Shown one piece after another: positions 1 through 12,329 of a stretch of 64,000 nt of DNA. How positions within the stretch are numbered: position 1 is the stretch's first letter; each line of letters begins with the position of its first letter. Location of the stretch: positions 310,001-374,000 of the forward strand of contig CBFDEM010000021.1 in assembly GCA_965603825.1 (NCBI GenBank), given 5' to 3'. Under the pieces are notes generated by a model that saw only the letters and a program-made list of their open reading frames with translations, ran no database searches and had not been told where the DNA came from. Origin of the DNA: Blepharisma stoltei ATCC 30299 (lineage: Eukaryota; Protista; Ciliophora). The position numbers were made by a program, and so were the translations under genes.

Positions 1-708
1 CTAGGATCTACAAAAGTTTGTATTCGTTTTTGTTCTCCAAACATTCTTTTCGCTTCTTCTTGCTTTCTGATTTTTTCAAGTGTGCGTCTTTGTTCTTCAT
101 ATAAATCATGTTCAACCAGCTTTTCTACTTCTTCGCCGATTTCACTCATTTCGTCTTCTCATTCGAACCGTTTGTTTTTCTTTTTCACTATATCATTTTT
201 CTGAGGCTGTTTATTAAATGATTTAATTTGAATTTCTTGATTTTCTTTTATTTGCCTATGCAATTTATCTTCATCTAAAACTTTTGAAATGATTTTGTAT
301 TTTTCTAAGAAAAAGCTTGGAAGATTATTATACTTTTTTTGCTCCAGATTAGGGGAAAACACTTGGACTTTCATGTATTCTTTTAACGCTGGAGATAGGT
401 TTTTTCGATTTATATAAAGAAGATCTTCTAAGGGATAATAAGTGGCTTGATTTTGCTGGGTATCAATGTTTATTTCTTCCTCAGAAAGCTCTGTTATATG
501 TGGTTCAGGCGACTTATGAGTCATTGGTGCTGCTCTAATTGCATCTCTAAGTCTTAGACCGTATTTGACTTTATATCTTCGCATATCGCTGCATTTTCTG
601 ATTAAATGTTTACACGTAAAAGCTAAGCTTATCTTGTTTTGGGATAAATTTGTCTTTATTTGAGAAGCTTTTGATGAATTCTGCATGATGCAGCTCTGAA
701 GTGCTCAT
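1..708 (-). CDS. Hypothetical protein, 3' end runs off the window
   Basis: ORF 159-686 continues through TGA(161-159)=Trp into a charged, open frame to position 1. Likely ATG at 708, joined by a putative 16-nt intron at 598-613. Confidence 0.6.
598..613 (-). other. Putative 16-nt spliceosomal intron GTAAACATTTAATCAG
   Basis: Removal joins the ATG-708 frame to the long ORF (...SFYV/KCSDMRR). GT-AG ends, with A at -6. Confidence 0.55.
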
Positions 709-856
709 TTTTTATTTTGAAGTTAATTTTAAAACCACTAATAGGAAAGCTTATCGGATACACATTAATATTATATCTGTCTTATATTTATAAATCTATT
801 CATTCAGTAAAGTTATTAGAAATTATACGACTTTTCTATTGCTTTTAATTATAGAA

Positions 857-1924
857 TTACTCAGGCATTCCACTCCATGGTTGGCTTTTAAGCTCAATTT
901 CTACCACTTTTTCTTCCTCTTGTGCTTGTTTTACCTCATCTTCTGTCACTCCAGCTATAAACTTCGCAGCTTTATTGACTCCTTTTTTGGCTTCTTTTTC
1001 TACTTTATTCAACAGCTCCATGGTCTCTTGCTTCATAGTCTGAACTCTTGGGTTATTATTAACCATGTCAAACGCTGACTTAGCTGTGCTTGTGACAGTT
1101 GTGGCCACTCCAGTGGTCGTGGATTTTACAGCTTGGACTTGAGGATATTGTGCAATTTCATTGAATTTGTCGAAGGTATTATTGACTCCTTTCTCAACAG
1201 ATTCTATAATGGTTTTAGAAGTTTCTTCAACTCTCTTCACGACTGGCTGAGATGCTTCAGAGATATAGCCATAGGCAACATTTCCGGCACTTTTAGTTTT
1301 CTCGACAACAGAACTTACGCTATTTTGGACAGTCCCGACAACGCCCCAGGAAGTTTCGCTGACTTTTTGAACTGCAGGCTGAGCGTATTCATAAGCACGG
1401 TTTCCAGCTTGTTTGGTTAAGTTTACTGCTGAGCTAAACCACCCTCGAAGGCCCGATGAAGGTTGTTGATCTTTAGATTCTTCAGAAACCTGAGCAGGCG
1501 ATGTAGGAAGAGTAGGTGCTAATTGTATGCCGATATCTCTAGAAGGGAAGTCTACATCATAAGATTCTCCTGCAGCTACTACAACAAGTCTCTTCTTATA
1601 ATATTCTGCAGCATTACTTCTGTATTTTATGTCAATTGGAGTATTATGATCTATTCCATAATAAGCAAAAAATTCATGAAGGGCGGTGTTGCCGCCTGCA
1701 GTCATATTTTTCAATTGATTAATTTCCCAATCATTATCTAGCAAAGATTTCACAACATTTCCAAGAATGTTCATATGTGACTGAGCGCAGTGAGAACAAA
1801 TAAAAGTTCCGAAAGTAACTGAAGCTTGAGAAGGATCTGGATAAAAACAGTCACAACAGGCTTGATTTTCTGGGTCTTCCCTAAGTTTCTCAAACACTTG
1901 AGTATTTATGCCAGATTCGCTCAT
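857..1924 (-). CDS. ArfGAP-domain protein (ArfGAP1/Gcs1-like)
   Basis: N-terminal PENQACCDC...GTFICSHCAQSH zinc finger, MTAGGN and KYRSNAAEYY. ATG at 1924 (MSESG). Confidence 0.85.
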   Translation of the reverse strand: MSESGINTQVFEKLREDPENQACCDCFYPDPSQASVTFGTFICSHCAQSHMNILGNVVKSLLDNDWEINQLKNMTAGGNTALHEFFAYYGIDHNTPIDIKYRSNAAEYYKKRLVVVAAGESYDVDFPSRDIGIQLAPTLPTSPAQVSEESKDQQPSSGLRGWFSSAVNLTKQAGNRAYEYAQPAVQKVSETSWGVVGTVQNSVSSVVEKTKSAGNVAYGYISEASQPVVKRVEETSKTIIESVEKGVNNTFDKFNEIAQYPQVQAVKSTTTGVATTVTSTAKSAFDMVNNNPRVQTMKQETMELLNKVEKEAKKGVNKAAKFIAGVTEDEVKQAQEEEKVVEIELKSQPWSGMPE

Positions 1925-2199
1925 TTTATATTGGAGATAATTAATGCTGATAAATTTAAGATAACAGAACAAGGAGGACTTAAATTAGAGTCAGAGAATT
2001 ACAAAAATTTTATGTAAAAAATAAATTATTTGAGGTTGTATAAATAATTTTTATAAAAACGGCTTGAAAGATGGCTTAAAAATAGATAACGCTGCTAAAA
2101 ATCTGAAGGTTAATAAGAAAAATAAATATAAATAATGTGCATTTCTTTTTATTAAATTAACAGCTAGTAGTTATAAAGCTATTTTTATTAATTATAATC

Positions 2200-3006
2200 A
2201 TGGATACAGATCGCGATTTGGTACCTGAGCTGGAAAACTTATATGAAAATAAAGATTGGGAGCACTTGCTAGCGAGATCTTCTGAATCTCCTCAAGATCC
2301 TGAAATTCAGTATTATAGAGTAGATTTTATTTAGGCCCTAGCTATGCAACAGCTTCACCGATTTCAAGAAGCAATAAAGATTTTTGAGTCTATTTATTCA
2401 CACATCGGAGTTTTGAGAGAAATTGACTATAACTTGGGGCTATGCCATTACCACCTTAGTAACATAGAGCCATCAATTGATTATTTGAGGCGATATATGT
2501 ATTCCAATCCAAGCCACCCTTACATATATTTTCACCTTGTGAAAGTGATGCTTGTTAAGAGTAATTTTTATTTAGAACTTCATACGGATATTGATGATGT
2601 TTGCGAGCGTGCTGTTGTATGAAGGTCAAAAAAAATCCCGTACAGAATTTGGGCATATTCGTTATATCAGCTCAAAAAATATAAAGAAGCCCATGGGAAG
2701 TGCTTGATAATTTTGGAGAAAAATAAAGAAGAGCATGCCATATGATTCTTACTTGGAAAAGTCCTCAGAAGATGCAAATATATAAAAGAGTGCAGAGCTG
2801 CCTTTGAAAAGTGCTGTGCCCTCGACCCAGAAAACCTGAAATACAAAAAGCGATATGAATCCCTTATTACAAAAATCGCCACAAAGCGTGATTATTCTTC
2901 TGCAAAGCCAAAAATTCAGTTAGATACTCCAATTCTCCCTAAAACTGCCGGGATAAAATTTCTTGAAAATCGTGGCTGCGAAGACTTATTTTGTAGGTTA
3001 TTTTAA
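2200..3006 (+). CDS. TPR-repeat protein with C-terminal CaaX-like CRLF
   Basis: TPR-like segments YNLGLCHYHL and WFLLGKVL...AFEKCCALDPEN. Two 15-nt introns, two TGA=Trp, TAA at 3004-3006. Confidence 0.75.
2320..2334 (+). other. 15-nt intron GTAGATTTTATTTAG
   Basis: Contains the in-frame TAG. Removal restores QYYR/ALAMQQ. Confidence 0.85.
2561..2575 (+). other. Putative stop-less 15-nt intron GTAATTTTTATTTAG
   Basis: Perfect match to the window consensus GTA.....TA...AG. Not forced by the reading frame. Confidence 0.65.
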
Positions 3007-3055
3007 TTATTGTTTTAATATTATGCTTTTAATTCTGAAACAGGGATTTAGCAAA

Positions 3056-4135
3056 CTATTTTGCTGTAGGAGTGTCAGCAACTGCTTTCACAAAATCTTT
3101 AGGGACTTCGTCTAATGTGTAAGTGTCCCAGGCTGTTTTTATACGCTCATCATTTTCAAATTCTTCAGGAATAAGTAAGCTTTCGTTTTCAGATTCATCT
3201 TCTTCAAGAATGAGTGTTTGTATCTTTAGTTTTAATGTGGTATCTAATATTTTTTCAATGTCCACATTTTCGGTAATAAGATTAGAAAAAAACTCAAGTA
3301 AGCCTTCAAAGTCGCTGTTTAAAATTTCATTTTGATAGTGGCTTATAATTCCTAGTGCAATATTTACCATCCCACCAAGTCCAAAAACCATCAAAAAATC
3401 CCAAATTCTTATACTACAGGATAGTGGAAATGAATAGGTAAACATCGTAAGAAACCACTTTTTGAGCCATAACATGTCATCAAACTCAACATTATCAAGA
3501 TGTTGAGAAACAGTTGGAAATAAATTTTCAGCTTCTTTATAAAAGCGATCGGCAAAAGTATTTACAAGTGAGAAATCTACGTCAAATAAATTTTTGACTC
3601 CAAATTTATTGAAAATGCAATCAAGCATCCAGTAACTTTCGCATTCATTTCCGCCTGATACAATTAATAGCATGCCAGCTATAAAATTGATCCCTTGGCA
3701 ATAGTCAATTTTATTGAATCCTATGAAGTTTAATAGGAGCTGTCTTAATGAGATAAGGTATTTCCCATTTGCAGAGAATTCTGGGTGGCTAGGAAATGTG
3801 CGCTCTATGTCTTTATCAATTACGTATATCAGGTCCGGGTCTTTAACTGAATCCGAAATTTGAACGTATTTAGAATAATCGATTTTACAATTCAAAACTG
3901 TTTTTCATAGGTTTCACCGAGCTTTTGGGGATAACTCTATCAGTAAAATTTTGAGCAAATTTTCTTTCCCCTTTTTAAGAAGCGGAAAAAAATTTTGGGC
4001 TGTTTTGGAATAGGCTTCATTTCTGGTATAGAAATATATAGGGATTTGTGGAGTACTTTCTGAGTGGACTTTATTTGACACTTTAGGCTTCGAACAGGCT
4101 TTTTTCTTGCTTGGAATCGTGCATTTGGAACCCAT
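3056..4135 (-). CDS. TBC-domain Rab GTPase-activating protein
   Basis: IDKDIERTFP and YCQGINF motifs. ORFs 3914-4135 and 3056-3895 join via KAR-W-NL-W-K (two TGA). N-terminal MGSKC acylation-type motif. Confidence 0.9.
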
Positions 4136-4606
4136 ATTATTTTAATAATGGACTAAATTTAATAACTTCGATATTATAGCTACTGGCTAACTATAAAAGA
4201 ATTTAGAATACTATTTTTGTATAAAAATTGAATTTGGATAATTTTTCACTCCTAAAGTTTTAAATTTTACCTTAAATTAGGTTATACAGTAGATAATAAC
4301 GCAAAATAGAATGCAACGTAAGATAAAAATATTTAATGCTACAATAAAATGGTTCATTTCAACGGGAATTTTGAAATGATCAAGATTAAATTCTTTTAGA
4401 TCATAGCTTTCTCTTTGGGTTTCCATTCCTCTTGCAAAGGTAAGAAAACAATCTCAACTTCTCAATGAATTTTTATATATCTCATTAAAAATTATCATTT
4501 AATTAGCTCTCGCATCTCTATCCAATAATATTTGGATAAAAATAATAAACACCTGCTAATATTTATTTCTCATTTAACCAATGTATTATCTTTTTTATCC
4601 GAGATT

Positions 4607-6153
4607 ATGGGAAACTGCACTTGCTTAGAACGCAATAACCACAAGGTAAAAGCCCCAAAAAAGTCAAACTCTACTAGCAAAACAGCGGAATCAGACGACA
4701 ATAAAGCTGACACAAAACCTCAAACTCCACGTGTCAATAAATCTAAATTTGTTAAGAAATCTCTAGGGAGTTTGAACCAAAACTTCGAAATCCTCAAACA
4801 TCTCGGCGAAGGTGGCTATGGGAAAGTTTATTTAGTAAGAGATAAACGAACTAACATCATACGAGCTATAAAAGAGGTCCAAAAATCAAAAACTGATAGT
4901 CAGTCAAACCAATCGTTATTAGATGAAGTAGAAATTCTTAAAGAACTAGTAATTTCTATTATAGGACCATCCAAATATAATGAAAATTTATGAAGTGATA
5001 GAATCATCAGATTGCTATTATATTGTAACGGAGCTACTATCGGGCGGAGAGTTATTTGATAAGCTTTTACATTATGAAGAGATAACTGAAGGGATTGCAG
5101 CGAAGTATATGTTTGATATTTTAGGAGCTTTGAATTATTGCCATGCACGTGGGATCATCCACAGAGATCTGAAGCCTGAAAATCTGCTATTTGAATCAAA
5201 AGACCCAGATTCTGCTTTAAAAATTATTGACTTTGGAATTGCTTCGAAGCTCCTTCCAAATTCAAAATTATCTGAAGCCATCGGCACAGTAACATTCTAT
5301 ATAGATCTACTATATGGCTCCAGAGGTCCTAGAAGGCTCCTATGACTCTAAATGTGACATATGAAGCGCTGGAGTAATTTTATTCATTATGCTTACTGGG
5401 AAAGCACCATTTAATGGTGAAACTCAAGCTGACACTATTTTGCAGATATCTGAAGGAATCGCTCACAAAAAGAAATATCTTAAACATTTATCTCCGGATG
5501 CTAAAGATCTTATTGTAAGCATGCTTAATTCTGACCCAAATTTGCGCCTATCAGCTCAAGAAGCGTTAGATCACCCATGGATCCAAAATAATATCAATAA
5601 AAATATAGAAGATCTTCCTATTTCTCAAGATGCGTTATCAAGACTAGGCGGTTTTAGGGTATTTTTTATATAGGCTTCGACAGAGCTGCAAAAGTCCATA
5701 TTGATTTTCATTTCTTCACAGATTTTTGGGCATAATGAAGAACAAGAGTTAGCCAGACTATTTAGAGAGCTAGATAAAAATGGGGATGGAAAATTATCAC
5801 GTGAAGAGCTCGAAGATGGCTACAAAAATCTCAAGCTTGTATCAAAAGCCCAAGTAGAAGAAATCATTAATAACTGCGACACTGATGGAAGCGGATATAT
5901 TGACTATAGTGAATTTCTTATGGCCGCTACCAACTGAAATCAAGTTTTCCAAAAAGAACAGCTGAGAAATGCATTTAGCTTATATGATCAGAGTGGTGAT
6001 GGGCTTTTATCTTTAGAAGAGTTGAAAACTTCAATACCAGGTATTGAAGACAGTGAATGGGACAAGTTTTTAGAAGACGCTGATTCTGATGGCGATGGAA
6101 TGATCAGCTTAAACGAGCTTAAGCAATATTTATCTAACAAAATATTTAATTAA
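4607..6153 (+). CDS. Calcium-dependent protein kinase (kinase + 4 EF-hands)
   Basis: GEGGYG, HRDLKPEN, DFG, YMAPE and D-I-W(TGA 5362)-S. EF-hands DKNGDG, DTDGSG, DQSGDG, DSDGDG. MGNCTC N-terminus. Three tiny introns. Confidence 0.93.
4949..4964 (+). other. 16-nt intron GTAATTTCTATTATAG
   Basis: Removal fixes a frameshift and gives the canonical LKEL/DHPNIMKIYE. Confidence 0.92.
5289..5304 (+). other. 16-nt intron GTAACATTCTATATAG
   Basis: Removal fixes a frameshift and gives IGT/IYYMAPEVL. Confidence 0.92.
5659..5673 (+). other. 15-nt intron GTATTTTTTATATAG
   Basis: Contains the in-frame TAG. Removal gives the CDPK junction FR/ASTELQKS. Confidence 0.88.
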
Positions 6154-6197
6154 ATATTATAGTGTTTAACAAAAATTCAAATAAAAATTCTTCATAA

Positions 6198-7796
6198 ATG
6201 ATAGAATCTAGAATCGAGGAAAGGAACAATAACTACCAAAAACTACCTGATTATTCAACAGTTCTTCAAAAGAGAGAAGAGGGAGCAATACAGCTGCGAA
6301 AAAAGAAAAGAACGGAAAATACACTTAAAAAAAGAGCGCTTTTGGCACCTGAAATCATTGAAGCAGACCCCAGCTTGCTTGAAAGGCCAAAGACTCCTCT
6401 AAACTTCAGATACTCTTCAACGCTTATTGAATTGTGCCCAGCATTAGGGACATTTGATATTTCTCCTAATGATAAAATCTCAATCCTTTTTGAGCTAATT
6501 AAAAAGCCACAAAATCTTGAAATTACAAGCGAATTAGTAAAATTGCTCAGGAAAATCTTTTCAAGTGAGCAAAATCCTCCTCTTGCTGAAGCTGTAACTT
6601 CAGGAGTTTCCATAGTTTTAATTGAATTATTGCGTACCGCTCCTTTATATATCAAATTAGAAGCTGCTTGATGCATTATTAATCTCACTTGCAGCCCTCC
6701 TGATGTCGCTGATTTATTAATACAGCAAGGCGCAGCACAAGCCTTGCTAGAAAATTTAGACTCAGACTCCTTAGACTTAGTAGACTTATGTGTCTGGGCA
6801 TTTGGAAACATTGCAACAAACTCCGTAAAAGACAGAAATATGGTGATAAAAATGAAAATAATCGATAAATTGTTGCAAATTTGTGAGAGAAAAATGACAA
6901 ATACACTGATAGAGGATATTTCATGAGTAATTTCTTGTTTAACAATGCATAATCCTCCCACAGATCCCAATGAATTTTATAAATTTCTTGATTATTTGCC
7001 TATTTTTTTCGAAGCCAATAATAATCGGGCAATAGAAGATTCATGCAAAACTTTAGTGTTTTTAACTAATCAAGGATCAGAATGAATAGATAAAGTAATA
7101 AAAACTGGCCTGCTGCCTAAGATAGCAGAGCTATTAGTCAGTTCTGTTGCCAGTCTGCAATTTTTGGCTTTAAAAATCTTAGGAAATGTCGCAACTGGAG
7201 ATGAGGAGCAGACTGATCTTGCAATTAATTTAGGACTTGCAGATCAAATAGGGCAAGTTTTAATGCCGACAGCAGTGTCTTCTGTAAAAATGGAGTGCTT
7301 GTGGGCTATTAGTAATATTTTGGCAGGAACAGCTGCACAGGTCACCTTGATTATAAATAAGCCTTATTTTCCTAAAATTGTAAATTTGATGATAGACTCA
7401 GATTCAGCTATGAGAAAAGAAGCAATTTGGGCTATTTCAAATGCGACTTTCTGCAAAGATCCAGAAACTATACTTTCTTTACTTCAATTCCCAGTATTAG
7501 AATATTTCACAGAAGCTTTTGAACTAAATGACATAAAAATTTACCACTCAGTAATTTCTGCAATTTACAATATCTTAAAATCAGGTCAGCAAAGGCTAAA
7601 AAACGGAAAAAATCTCGCAGCAGTTAAATTTGAAGAGCTAGGAGGTGTCGAGATTTTAGAAGAAATTTTTAGGAAACATGGGGATGCAGCCAGCAAAAAA
7701 ACACAGAGAATTTTAGAAGAATTTTATGGGATTATTGAAGAAGACGAAGAAATTCAAATACTGACTGAGGTTCCTGCTACTTTTATATTTAGTTAA
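6198..7796 (+). CDS. Importin alpha (IBB + ARM repeats)
   Basis: IBB-like KREEGAIQLRKKKR. ARM motifs EAA-W(TGA)-CIIN, WAFGNIA, WAISNI, KEAIWAISNA. Three in-frame TGA. Confidence 0.92.
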
Positions 7797-7874
7797 ATAA
7801 TTATTACACTTAATCTCACTTAAGATACCATTTTTATTGATATTTTTAGTTAGCTAAACACATTTTATAATAAA

Positions 7875-10800
7875 ATGAACTGGGAAGCTCAATTAAATAT
7901 CCCTCCAACAGAAAGTTCTTCTACTTATTCTTCATTTTTACAGTCTTCTATCTCTAAGCCCTTAGCTATGGAAAAGTGTGGAAGCTCTTGAGGCACTCGA
8001 GACCATCGTGATGGGTATCTTGACCCAAAAATCTTATCCACAGTGGAAAATCTACTCAAAAACGAGAGCTCTAGTGGGATTAACTTTGATAGCTATGAAA
8101 AAATTCCTGTTGAAATCAGTGAAAGCTTTCCCCAAATCAACTTTTTCACAGATTGTGATGTAAATGAGCTGTTGCTCAAAAACGTTGCCAGGATGGGATA
8201 CAAGCGCCCTACTCCAGTCCAGAAGTATGCCATACCTGTATCAATACTCAGAAGAGACTTAATGGCAATTGCTGAGACTGGCTCAGGTAAAACAGCCGCC
8301 TTTTTATTCCCTATGTTTGCAAAAATGCTCAAAGATGGTCCGCCACATCCAATTGATAGTGACATAGCCTACCCAATTGGGCTTATTTTAGCACCAACAA
8401 GAGAGTTAGTCCAGCAGCTCCATGAGGAAACCTTGAAATTTGCCCATAAAACTGGCATTAAAACTCTCTGTGTTTTTGGCGGTACTGGGATGCAGTATCA
8501 AATGAACGAGCTTAAGCGAGGCGTTGACATCCTTGTAGCTACCCCTGGAAGACTTATTGATTTTCTCAATAGAAAGCTGATAAATCTGTCAATTATAAGG
8601 TACTTGATTTTAGATGAAGGTGATAGGATGCTTGATATGGGGTTTGAGCCTTCTATTAAGAGGATTCTGGAAGCGACTGAAGGCAATGATCATGAAACTA
8701 TTATGAGTTCTGCCACTTTTTCACCTGAAATGAGGAAAATTGCTGAAATTTACATGAAAGATTATGTATATTTGACTGTTGGAAAAGCAGGCTCTACTTC
8801 AGAAAATATCACTCAGAGATTCTACTACGTTGAAGATTATTCCAAAATGCCTGCCCTACTACAAATTCTCCAAGAAATCAGAGGCCTCACTTTAATTTTC
8901 GTCGAGCGTAGAACTGAAGTTGAGGTAGTCGCTAATTTTTTACAAGAAAATGGACACGAAGCAGCTTGTATTCATGGAGAAAAAAACCAATTTGAAAGGC
9001 ATAAAGCACTTACAAGTTTCAAAGCTGGAAGAGTCCAAATTTTAGTCGCGACTGATGTAGCTTCCAGAGGTCTTGATATCCAGAATATTGAAACTGTGAT
9101 TAATTATGATACTCCAAAGCAAATTGAAGGATATATTCATAGGATTGGCAGAACTGGAAGAATTGGGAAAAGCGGCTTAGCTATTTCTTTTTTAAATTCA
9201 GGATGCAGATCTATATTTAGAGAACTCAGAGACTTGCTGATAGAGACAAAACAAGAAATTCCTGAATGATATGAAGATCTTATGACTGGGAAGGCTAGGC
9301 CTAAATATCCAAGCTGTGATAAATGATATGGAGATTCAAGTAAAATTGGGGGAAAAAGCTATGAAAGAAGAGAATATGGAGGAAACAATCATTATGCAGG
9401 CAATAAAGAAAATTCAGGATGGGGAGCTGAAAATAGAGGCTATGGAAGCTCGGATTGAGATCTAAAAAGCTCAGAATCTGGATGGGGTGCACAGAGTAAT
9501 GCGAAGCCTAGATATGGGGAAAACACTAATAAAGCAAGCTATGGGCAAGCAAATAGAGATAATAAAAAATTTGATCAAAATAGCTACCAATATAGTGGAA
9601 GGTTTAAATGTGACCAAGAATATGAAAAAAGAAATTCTGACTATTTTGCCTCACAGAATCCTCCATACTATTTAGCTAACCAAAAAGGGCCTACAAGAAA
9701 TCATGATAATCCTTCAGAACAATGGGGGAAGCAAGGAAGCAACTATAATCAAAAGCAGGCTTTTCAAAGCCACAACCAAGAGGATTACCAAAGACGCATC
9801 TCAAATCCTTCAACTCAAAATGATCTATGGGGCTCTCAAAATAGCCAAAGGGAATCCCAAAGCAGCCAAATGTGGGGATCAAGCCCTTCATCTGTTCAAA
9901 GCAACCAATGGAAACCCAAAAATAGCGTAAGCTCAGCACAAAGTAATCAACGAGGAGATTATAACAAAAGCAACCAATGAAGCCAAGATAATGCCCAATA
10001 CAGATCTAGAGATTATGATCAAAGCAGTCAATGGGAGCAAGAGCGAGGAGATAGTAGCAAAAGCAGTCAGTGGGGTCAAGGTAATCCTCAGCGAGGAGCT
10101 AGGGATTATGATAAAAGCAATCAATGGAGTGGCCAAGAAAATAGTCAACGAGAAGCTAACAACTATGAAAAAAGCAGCGAGTGGGGAGGTCAAGAAAATA
10201 GCCAACGAGGAGCGAGAAATTATGATAAAAGCAATCAATGGGGTAGTCAAGATAGCAACAAAAGAGTAGATAGCCAAAGAAGAGATAAAAATTATGATAG
10301 AAGCGATCAATGGGGAAGCAAAGAGGGCAATCAAAGAGGACCTGGCATTGATAGGAGCAATCAGTGGGGTGATCAAGAAAGCAGGTATGAAAAGAAATTT
10401 AAAAACAGCTCAAGGCTAGATGTTGAAAATCCAAGAAGGCATCAGGATAAAGGAAGGCAATCAATATCATCCGATTGGGGTGATATTCCTACTACTAAAG
10501 CAGAAGCCAGAAGTAGTTTAGGCTCAGGCTGGGGTGATATTCCTGCTACCAAATCTGAAGCGAAAAGCAACCCAAATTCAGGCTGGGGTGATATTCCTGC
10601 TACCAAAACAGAAACCAAAAGTAGCCTCAGTTCGGGTTGGGGCGATATTAGCAGCAGTAAGCCAGAAGTCAAAAGCAATCCAAATCCAGGCTGGGGCGAT
10701 ATTCCTTCAGCTAAGACAGCAGCAAAAAGTAATTTAAATTCAAGTTGGGGTGATACCCCCGCTCTTAAATCAGAAACCAAAAGCAGCTCAAACTCTGGCT

Positions 10801-11642
10801 GGGGCGATATTCCGACTACCAAAACAGAAATCAAAAACAATACAAATTCTAATCGGTGTGATATCCCTTGTGCTAAAATAGAAGCCAAAAGCAATCAAAA
10901 TTCAGGCTGGGATGACATTGATACCAAATCAGAAATAAAAGTCAATCCGAGCTTAGACTGGAAAGATACTCCTCTCGCCAAATCAGAAACAAAAGCCAGC
11001 ACAAATTCTGGATGGGGTGATGCTCCTGCTACTAAAGCAGAAAATAAAAGCAACCCAAACTCAGGCTGGGCCGATATTCTTGATAATAAAAATGAAGCCA
11101 AAATTAGCCCAAGTTCAAGCTCAAGTGATACTCCCATTAATAAATCAGAAGCAAAAAGCGATCCATATTCTAGCTGGAGCGATATTCTTGTTACTAAAAA
11201 TGAAGACAAAGGCAACCCAAGTTTGAGCTGGAGCGATATTCTTTCTACCAAATCAGAAACAAAAATCAACCCAAATTCAAGCTGAAGTGATACTGTAAAA
11301 CCGGAAGCCAAAAGCAATATAAACTCAGATTGGAGAGACACTCCTTCAGAAATATTGCAAAAAGAAATCCCTAACCCCACTGATATTTATAGTGCTGTAA
11401 AAAATGAAAATTCTTACGACACCTCCAGTAAAAGTCCAGCCAAAAAAATAAACTCAGATGTTCTCGGTAACTGGGATAAATTTGGCAGCTCTTTAGAAAA
11501 GCAAACCTGAACACCAGGAGAAAAGTCATCTCCGTGAATAGGCTGCAGTGAAAGCCTCTACGGAATTCAGCTTTCTAGTCAAGCTTCAATTGAAGAAACA
11601 AAAGAAGTAACCATAGAAAGTGTTCTGGTAGAAAACTTATAA
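7875..11642 (+). CDS. DDX3/Vasa(PL10)-family DEAD-box RNA helicase with ~790-aa WG/GW-repeat C-terminal tail (1255 aa)
   Basis: GINFDSYEKIPVE, Q motif PTPVQ, AETGSGKT, PTREL, TPGR, DEGD, SAT, HRIGRTGR and QEIPE-W(TGA). The frame has no TAA/TAG from ATG 7875 to TAA 11640-11642. Confidence 0.9.
9900..10380 (+). repeat. Degenerate coding repeat, ~13-24 aa units, consensus (Q)RG..(D/N)YDKS(N/S)QWG.Q
   Basis: Trp codons at 9909, 9978(TGA), 10032, 10071, 10125, 10182, 10239, 10311 and 10365. Confidence 0.8.
10467..11345 (+). repeat. 54-bp (18-aa) coding tandem repeat, 17 units, consensus SGWGDIPATKSEAKSNPN
   Basis: Trp-position codons at 10476, 10530, 10584, 10638, 10692, 10746, 10800, 10854, 10908, 10959, 11013, 11067, 11121, 11175, 11229, 11283(TGA) and 11331. 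Confidence 0.93.
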
Positions 11643-11825
11643 TTATAAAGGATAATATATAGTGTTGTTAAAATCATATCTAATTTGTAATAAATTCAAA
11701 TTTCTGACACTTTTATATGCATTTTGCACATTTAGTATATATATTGGCATTTGAATCATATCTTATATTTATATATAGCCTATTCTCTTATGCATGAATT
11801 ATAATTGTAAATCTTTTAATTATTA

Positions 11826-12329
11826 CTATGATGAGCTTTTTCTCCATAATAAAAATCGATCTTCTAGCCTTTTAATTTCAAAATCACTTAATCCAAGCTG
11901 TTTTATATATTCTTGGCTATCGTTATATATACAAGAATGGACTTCAGAAATCCTATGAGAGTGTAATAGATCAGCCATATCTCCACAGTCACAGCTGTCA
12001 GTTAATGCCAGTCTGAAATAAAAATATGCTTTGTCTAGGTCCATGTCTACGTACTTATCCTTTATATAAATCTTTCCTAATTGAAAAGCGGCTAAGCTGC
12101 TCGTTCTTGCTGCTTTTCTAAGCCAATAAAGCGCATGTGGTATGTCAGGAGGTTGGTTTTTCATACCTCTTCTAAGGAGTTTTGAGTAAATTATCATTGC
12201 TTCTGTGTTTCCTTCTTCTGCCTGAGTTTTATATTCTTTCATTCATTTATTTAAGTGTTTCTGCAAGCATTTCCCTAAGCTTTTTGATTTTGGCTGGGAA
12301 TCCGTGATACTGTCATTACTTCTATTCAT
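11826..12329 (-). CDS. Sel1-like repeat protein
   Basis: AEEGNTEAM, ALYWLRKAA, AAFQLGKIY...DLDKAYFYF. Extended upstream through one TGA to ATG 12329. Confidence 0.75.

Follow-up and report, generated by a model that had tools for sequence, protein, structure and literature searches.

The stretch of DNA analyzed here, hereafter the window, comprises 64 kb (C21:310001-374000) of the 41.46-Mb, 64-contig assembly of the ciliate Blepharisma stoltei, and the gene under study occupies positions 7875-11642 of its plus strand. This gene encodes a DEAD-box helicase of the DDX3/Ded1 type that continues, in the same reading frame, into a 790-residue low-complexity tail bearing arrays of tryptophan-glycine (WG) motifs. 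According to the published B. stoltei genome paper, UGA encodes Trp in this organism, introns measure 15-16 nt, and the annotation was made with translation table 4. We applied the same table for counting and coordinates, and the core and tail pieces were submitted to protein searches separately. RNA contigs aligned to positions 6100-12000 of the window delimit the transcript:

7831-11673, plus strand: unspliced mRNA with short untranslated regions (UTRs), from RNA contigs
7875-11642, plus strand: coding sequence of 1,255 codons plus TAA, with UGA read as Trp; the ATG at 7875 is the first that the RNA contig contains
11640-11642, plus strand: TAA stop codon, the first TAA or TAG in this frame
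11670-11673, plus strand: poly(A) addition site, the exact base being ambiguous inside a run of four A

Eight TGA codons lie in this frame (at 7989, 9267, 9324, 9456, 9978, 11283, 11508, and 11535). The initial annotation of the locus had described a hidden helicase broken at 9269 under the standard code; a TGA is indeed present there, but it is one of eight such codons rather than the sole break, and the gene is concealed only under the standard code, not under the table used for B. stoltei. Its reading that the frame passes 9269 and stays open for about 790 codons to the TAA at 11642 was borne out, as the tail frame (9270-11639) is free of TAA and TAG over its 790 codons, compared with 9-67 in the remaining five frames (P ~4e-18, from base composition). 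The TGA at 9267-9269, previously assigned to the conserved Trp of QEIPEW, aligned to the Trp of QEIPEW, QNIPDW, QIIPGW, and QVVPEW in four relatives, and the TGA at 7989 aligned to the Trp of a conserved N-terminal WGxRDxRxG motif in paralogues and relatives. Many further long frames in the window contain in-frame TGA and lack TAA or TAG. Antisense frames at 10292-11386, 10953-11492, and 9825-10415 (minus strand), which contain many TGA codons, were set aside as by-products of repeat composition.

The stretch was represented in four RNA runs (X1-X4) of one study. A single X2 contig spanned 7921-11673 with no mismatches or gaps, thereby providing the continuous RNA coverage across 9269 that had been proposed as a check on the gene model, while two X1 contigs covered 7831-10553 and 10578-11673, the second continuing into 23 A. 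From these limits, the 5' UTR measures about 44 nt and the 3' UTR about 30 nt. No contig covered the intergenic interval 7777-7830, none extended past 11673 in X1, X3, or X4 (three of the four runs), and contig depth differed 10-40 fold between the helicase gene and the gene upstream. The intergenic gaps, the poly(A) end, and the jump in depth relative to the upstream gene identify the contigs as RNA assemblies. They align to the genome without gaps and revealed no introns, so that the helicase and its WG tail, as first proposed, form one frame on one polyadenylated, intron-less mRNA. Termination at the UGA at 9267, with the tail as a second gene, is excluded by the spanning contig, by the poly(A) site at 11673, and by the use of UGA as Trp in this organism. 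An apparent joint between 8650 and 9048 was rejected as a splice junction, as the contigs concerned share no more than 23 letters with the gene, at motifs II and V, and over the rest of their length represent another DEAD-box transcript. The gene and its helicase-plus-tail architecture are real, a conclusion that we hold with near certainty.

Allele content offered an indication of when the gene is expressed. Runs X1 and X2 contained reference alleles only, while X3 and X4 contained two alleles at about 28 sites. The supplementary information (SI) of the genome paper states that samples of ATCC 30299 only were taken before mixing (A1 and A2) and that all later samples were strain mixtures; from this, the gene was probably well expressed even ahead of conjugation. 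The abundance of the transcript in these presumed pre-conjugation runs argues against strictly development-specific expression, although contig depth does not rank genes.

The helicase core comprises the following features:

7989-8024, plus strand: N-terminal DDX3 motif WGTRDHRDGYLD, its Trp encoded by TGA 7989; it aligns with WGTRDGRDGFLD, WGRRDRRNGFLD, and WGERDNRDGYLD of paralogues and relatives
8211-8735, plus strand: RecA1 domain, Pfam DEAD PF00270 (E 5e-43)
8271-8294, plus strand: motif I, AETGSGKT (usually AQTGSGKT); among 275 family sequences sampled, 271 have Q and 2 have E
8613-8624, plus strand: motif II, DEGD in place of DEAD, common to the paralogue on contig C12, its relative P0004, and three short canonical-type DDX3 proteins
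8844-9167, plus strand: RecA2 domain, Pfam Helicase_C PF00271 (E 1e-32)
9252-9269, plus strand: DDX3 C-terminal motif QEIPEW, its Trp encoded by TGA 9267-9269

Membership in the DEAD-box family is indicated by PF00270 at 147 bits (cut-off 26) and PF00271 at 113 bits (cut-off 23.5), and motifs Q, I, Ia, Ib, II, III (SAT), IV, V, and VI were all located, with V (ATDVASRGLD) and VI (HRIGRTGR) intact. Of 239 sampled instances of motif II, 5 read DEGD, some of them in short canonical-type DDX3 proteins that carry YIPPALR. Among environmental and MMETSP sequences, P0187, P0190, and P0200 are of this short canonical type with DEGD, two of the three carrying YIPPALR, and their tails end in RRRW. The occurrence of DEGD in these presumed housekeeping copies suggests that the Ala-to-Gly change is tolerated, and with motifs Q to VI present and motif II reading DEGD, the core is probably active.

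Flanking motifs (WGxRDxRxG, GINFxxYxxIPVE, and QE[IV]PxW) place the core within the DDX3/Ded1/PL10 subfamily. The N-terminal YIPPH[LK]R, which is the eIF4E-binding motif of DDX3X, is replaced by NIPPTES; both short B. stoltei DDX3 proteins and 85 of 277 sampled relatives possess it, and its absence therefore indicates a divergent DDX3 paralogue rather than the housekeeping orthologue. Vasa is an animal-specific offshoot of PL10. The initial designation of the core as Vasa-like was not upheld, as the best solved relatives of the core were DDX3X (391 bits), Vasa (355), and DDX23 (311), and the gene nests inside the ciliate DDX3 clade in a tree that contained no Vasa sequence. The term holds only as an analogy; judged from its core, the gene is a heterotrich-specific DDX3 paralogue.

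The helicase-core phylogeny recommended at the outset was run as a quick maximum-likelihood tree (LG+G4, 30 rows) with Shimodaira-Hasegawa-like approximate likelihood ratio test (SH-aLRT) support only and three other B. stoltei DEAD-box genes as the outgroup. Ciliate-type DDX3 proteins formed one clade (SH-aLRT 99) that included the helicase gene. Within it, a long-tailed group (SH-aLRT 90) separated P0003 and P0180 from the helicase gene together with the pair formed by the C12 paralogue and P0004, the latter grouping receiving 99. Since P0004 comes from another organism in which UGA encodes Trp (SRR24908292), the split between the helicase gene and the C12 type predates the divergence of that species. 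The B. stoltei genome contains four DDX3-like genes: two short canonical ones (about 505 aa, with YIPPHKR, DEAD, and AQTGSGKT), the C12 paralogue (L002; C12:355089-359363, minus strand; CAG9314497.1 / A0AAU9IMR1; 763 aa, with DEGD), and the gene at 7875-11642. The C12 paralogue, P0004, and P0003 share with the helicase gene a core identity of 62-65% and a long disordered C-terminal tail, and the first two also share its DEGD. Their tails, however, are RG/RGG- and Tyr-rich with few Trp and a DPWG or DPWS end, whereas the helicase gene carries S/N/K-rich WG arrays and lacks that end. The tail of the C12 paralogue, of about 300 residues, ends in DPWSSYR, while the last residues are EDPWG in P0004 and DDDPWG in P0003, and comparison of these termini suggests a conserved D-P-W motif.

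Tandem Repeats Finder and manual phasing delimited the arrays of the 790-residue tail:

9270-9950, plus strand: proximal non-repeat tail, S/N/Q/G/Y-rich, with five scattered WG; no homologue found
9951-10394, plus strand: array A, 8 units of 57 nt (about 19 residues), consensus [RN][DN]Y[DE]KSNQW[GS]
10476-11336, plus strand: array B, 16 units of 54 nt (18 residues), consensus W-G/S-D-I/T-P/L-x-x-K-x-E-x-K-S-N-P-N-S-G
11337-11639, plus strand: unique C-terminal stretch with four further Trp, including those of TGA 11508 and TGA 11535

The tail contains 34 Trp, 18 WG, and 10 GW (8 of them as GWG), and 20 of its Trp have a neighboring Gly. Our recount was identical to the earlier one of 18 WG plus two GW-only dipeptides, many as GWG and most within the two arrays. 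Trp recurs every 18-19 residues in both arrays, and WG is found in four separate sequence contexts of the tail. Most WG Trp are TGG codons, and the arrays are thus independent of the genetic-code call. None of 20,000 composition-preserving shuffles yielded more than 9 WG (expectation about 2.6), against the 18 seen, although this test overstates independence because most WG sit in tandem repeats. The tail consists of 72% S/N/Q/G/K/D/E/T/P, 10% V/I/L/M/F/C, and 4.3% W, with a net charge of -1, and the predicted structure of an array B fragment fell below 50 in predicted local distance difference test (pLDDT) score. The tail displays the sequence hallmarks of an Argonaute (Ago) hook, namely Trp next to Gly or small polar residues within disordered, low-complexity sequence, and also those of a Ded1-type sticker region, namely a disordered region directly past the core with regularly spaced Trp. 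Array B units are conserved at W1 (14/16), D3 (16/16), K8 (15/16), E10 (14/16), and K12 (14/16); Gly after Trp is retained in only 8 of the 16 units while W-x-D is kept, and the 3' units have decayed. The pooled ratio of non-synonymous to synonymous divergence (dN/dS) among units was about 0.38 with dS about 1, synonymous sites being near saturation. The retention of W, D, K, E, and K at this ratio despite such a dS therefore points to some peptide-level constraint on the array B unit.

Trp-bearing tails recur in the DDX3/Ded1 family. Among the 231 DDX3-family sequences gathered, the region past QE[IV]PxW has a median of 78 residues and one Trp, compared with 790 residues and 34 Trp in B. stoltei. 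Repeated GGWG motifs follow a DDX3 core, as here, in Helicostylum pulchrum (GAA5806209.1, P0118; 10 motifs), Spinellus fusiger (KAI7865127.1, P0101; 5), and Tetrapisispora phaffii Ded1 (TPHA_0B02850; 4, ending in SWW), and such repeats are also present in P0066. The fungal arrays are shorter (4-10 motifs), Gly/Ala/Pro-rich, and without sequence kinship to the B. stoltei repeats, so that the origin was probably independent. Mucorales fungi possess RNA interference, and their GGWG tails may, from sequence, be candidate Ago-hook or sticker tails. In Helicostylum pulchrum, three Cys-rich repeats, RanBP2-type zinc-finger-like by eye, precede the GGWG array. The initial annotation knew of no description of this architecture in heterotrichs. 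We found no paper on the B. stoltei protein; DEAD, DDX, and Vasa are absent from the genome paper and its SI, where helicases come up only in relation to Dicer. The architecture does have precedents, given the GGWG-tailed DDX3/Ded1 proteins of Mucorales and yeast and the combination of helicase and Ago hook in plant SDE3.

The closest functional precedent is offered by Ded1p of Saccharomyces cerevisiae, in which eIF4G1 binding and the TORC1 response both require W603/W604 (PMC6743465). Five regularly spaced, conserved C-terminal Trp of Ded1p serve as stickers; in the 5WA mutant, condensation sets in at a higher temperature (bioRxiv 10.1101/2022.10.11.511767). Ded1p and human DDX3X resemble the helicase gene in the core, in WGxRD, GINFxxYxxIPVE, and QE[IV]PxW, and in a Trp-bearing disordered C-terminal region directly past the core. 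The helicase gene differs from them in a tail about 10 times the family median, in its two tandem arrays, in DEGD and AETGSGKT, and in lacking YIPPH[LK]R; unlike the Ded1p/DDX3X case, its genome also retains two separate canonical DDX3 genes. Because Trp/GGWG tails recur in DDX3/Ded1 proteins and the Trp of Ded1p are stickers, we read the tail as a large expansion of a family trait. By this analogy, we consider it somewhat better than an even prospect that the tail, as a multivalent array of Trp motifs, makes this divergent DDX3 helicase condense or dock on a partner. The heterotrich-specific DDX3 paralogue clade to which the gene belongs lacks YIPPH[LK]R and has gained long low-complexity C-terminal tails; in the helicase gene, two tandem-repeat expansions would have lengthened the Trp-bearing disordered stretch normal to the family to 790 residues, placing Trp at intervals of 18-19. 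The regularly spaced Trp could serve as short linear motifs or multivalent stickers and, as in Ded1p, may gather the helicase into a ribonucleoprotein condensate or onto a partner that has Trp-binding sites, candidate partners including Piwi. If functional, the Trp arrays would constitute the most extreme natural aromatic-sticker tail of the Ded1/DDX3 family and a test case for how Trp number and spacing tune helicase condensation.

The same Ded1p precedent admits a different partner. The Trp motifs could recruit the translation or mRNA-decay machinery (eIF4G, as in Ded1p, or CCR4-NOT) rather than an Argonaute, and the tail does start right after QEIPEW, where Ded1 has its eIF4G-binding region. 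In GW182, the W-motifs that recruit CCR4-NOT lie in the silencing domain. The dependence of eIF4G1 binding on Ded1p W603/W604 also favors this possibility (PMC6743465), whereas the N-terminal YIPPH[LK]R of the canonical copies is missing from the paralogue clade, which suggests a move away from an initiation role; we judge such recruitment highly improbable.

Several observations weigh against an expanded Ded1-type sticker tail. The retention of D3, K8, E10, and K12 beside the Trp, as read from the aligned units, speaks for an epitope with more specificity than a generic sticker would have, and the ATPase activity of the DEGD motif is one that we infer from sequence. Between-strain differences in the X3 and X4 contigs were 13 non-synonymous and 5 synonymous in the tail, compared with 2 and 8 in the core; none fell on Trp codons, and no indels or allele length differences were seen. 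Two protein searches of tail pieces, Pfam, the ESM Atlas, and the B. stoltei genome returned no homologue of the tail, the protein searches covering subjects of 0.55-1.75 times the piece length, so that full-length kin were possibly missed. As no tail orthologue was found, part of the tail may be neutral. In the extreme case, the tail would be a mostly neutral, fast-evolving low-complexity expansion produced by replication slippage, with no Trp-specific role, and the gene an ordinary lineage-specific DDX3 paralogue. The non-synonymous excess between strains, the failure of the protein, genome, and ESM Atlas searches to return a homologue, and the decay of the 3' array B units are consistent with this. 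Against it, 790 codons have remained open in A-rich DNA, W, D, K, E, and K were kept at a dN/dS of about 0.38 across units with a dS of about 1, WG occurs in four separate contexts, and the alleles of the two strains show no length difference in the contigs. Overall, a tail that is mostly neutral appears quite unlikely.

The third alternative assigns the arrays to small-RNA pathways, as the initial annotation had proposed. The WG/GW arrays would form an Ago hook docking several Piwi proteins, tying RNA unwinding to the scan-RNA/genome-editing pathway, which we regard as possible but doubtful. The 20 Trp with adjacent Gly in a disordered tail agree with it. GW182/TNRC6, NRPE1, SPT5L, SPT6L, Tas3, Wag1p/CnjBp, and Nowa1/2 all present reiterated WG/GW in a disordered region, as the tail does, and the ciliate ones act with Piwi-clade proteins. 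Twi1p, of the ciliate Piwi clade, is reported to bind the GW proteins Wag1p and CnjBp, and Nowa1/2 to carry GGWG repeats (cited in PMC3105430 and PMC12477606). None of these platforms, from GW182 to Nowa1/2, carries a DEAD-box core, and the array B unit differs from them in its extra conserved positions and in the half of units without Gly beside Trp, so that the hook is here a candidate from sequence. Plants provide a helicase with an Ago hook (SDE3) as well as an SPT6 with one (SPT6L). Arabidopsis SDE3 (UPF1-like, with GW motifs) and Caenorhabditis elegans GLH/RDE-12 (Vasa-type, with FG repeats engaging Argonautes) likewise join a helicase and aromatic-Gly repeats in one polypeptide; however, SDE3 belongs to another helicase superfamily, the FG repeats of GLH/RDE-12 are N-terminal while the WG repeats here are C-terminal, and the tails are not homologous.

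The nine Piwi genes of B. stoltei, of which two show strong developmental induction, offer a potential set of partners. Two of the nine, L014 (C13) and L015 (C6), are 94% identical and TGA-free, and are probably the two closely related development-induced Piwi paralogues in the SI of the genome paper. A complex prediction of the Piwi protein L014 (779 aa) with an array B piece (131 aa, 7 units) gave an ipSAE of 0.01 with the array B piece below 50 pLDDT, and we counted it neither for nor against docking. Other evidence speaks against an Ago hook. GGWG-type tails also occur on budding-yeast Ded1, and in S. cerevisiae, which is not known to have an Argonaute, the C-terminal Trp serve eIF4G binding and condensation with no Argonaute needed. 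Half of the array B units lack the Gly yet keep W-x-D, and the transcript is abundant in reference-allele-only runs that probably precede conjugation. Moreover, the three Trp pockets of the hook-Argonaute interface are reported to be highly variable in the PIWI clade (PMC12477606).

A genome-wide pattern search for coding WG arrays returned three only, those of the helicase gene and of two SPT6 homologues, and the GWGD core of array B is identical in just these two others. The SPT6 homologues, L026 (C33:19000-27000, plus strand, 1-4818) and L027 (C41:509000-517500, minus strand, 3977-8500), were identified by the Pfam domains SH2_2, HHH_7, HHH_9, and Spt6_S1. Their C-termini contain 4-6 zinc knuckles of the CCHC type with RG runs on either side, together with SGGWG[GDE]S arrays holding 23 and 15 WG, and by their sequence layout they look convergent with the Ago hook of plant SPT6L. 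Helicase and GW functions are not uniquely merged in the helicase gene, since B. stoltei also has these two separate SPT6-GW platform proteins. The presence of GWGD on a helicase and two SPT6 factors points to a shared reader of the motif. The identity of this reader, Piwi or other, would reveal if the link between GW proteins and Argonautes also holds for the Piwi clade of early-branching ciliates, in which the canonical pockets are probably not conserved. In its fullest form, the tail would be a genuine multivalent Piwi-docking platform that physically ties a DDX3-type helicase to scan-RNA/Piwi complexes in an early-branching ciliate, shares GWGD with the two SPT6-GW proteins, and merges in one polypeptide the Ema1 and GW-protein roles that are split in Tetrahymena and Paramecium; we consider this doubtful, slightly more so than Piwi docking as such.

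Upstream of the helicase gene, at 6198-7796 on the plus strand, lies a 532-codon frame that appears by eye to be importin-alpha-like with ARM-type repeats, at a much lower contig depth.

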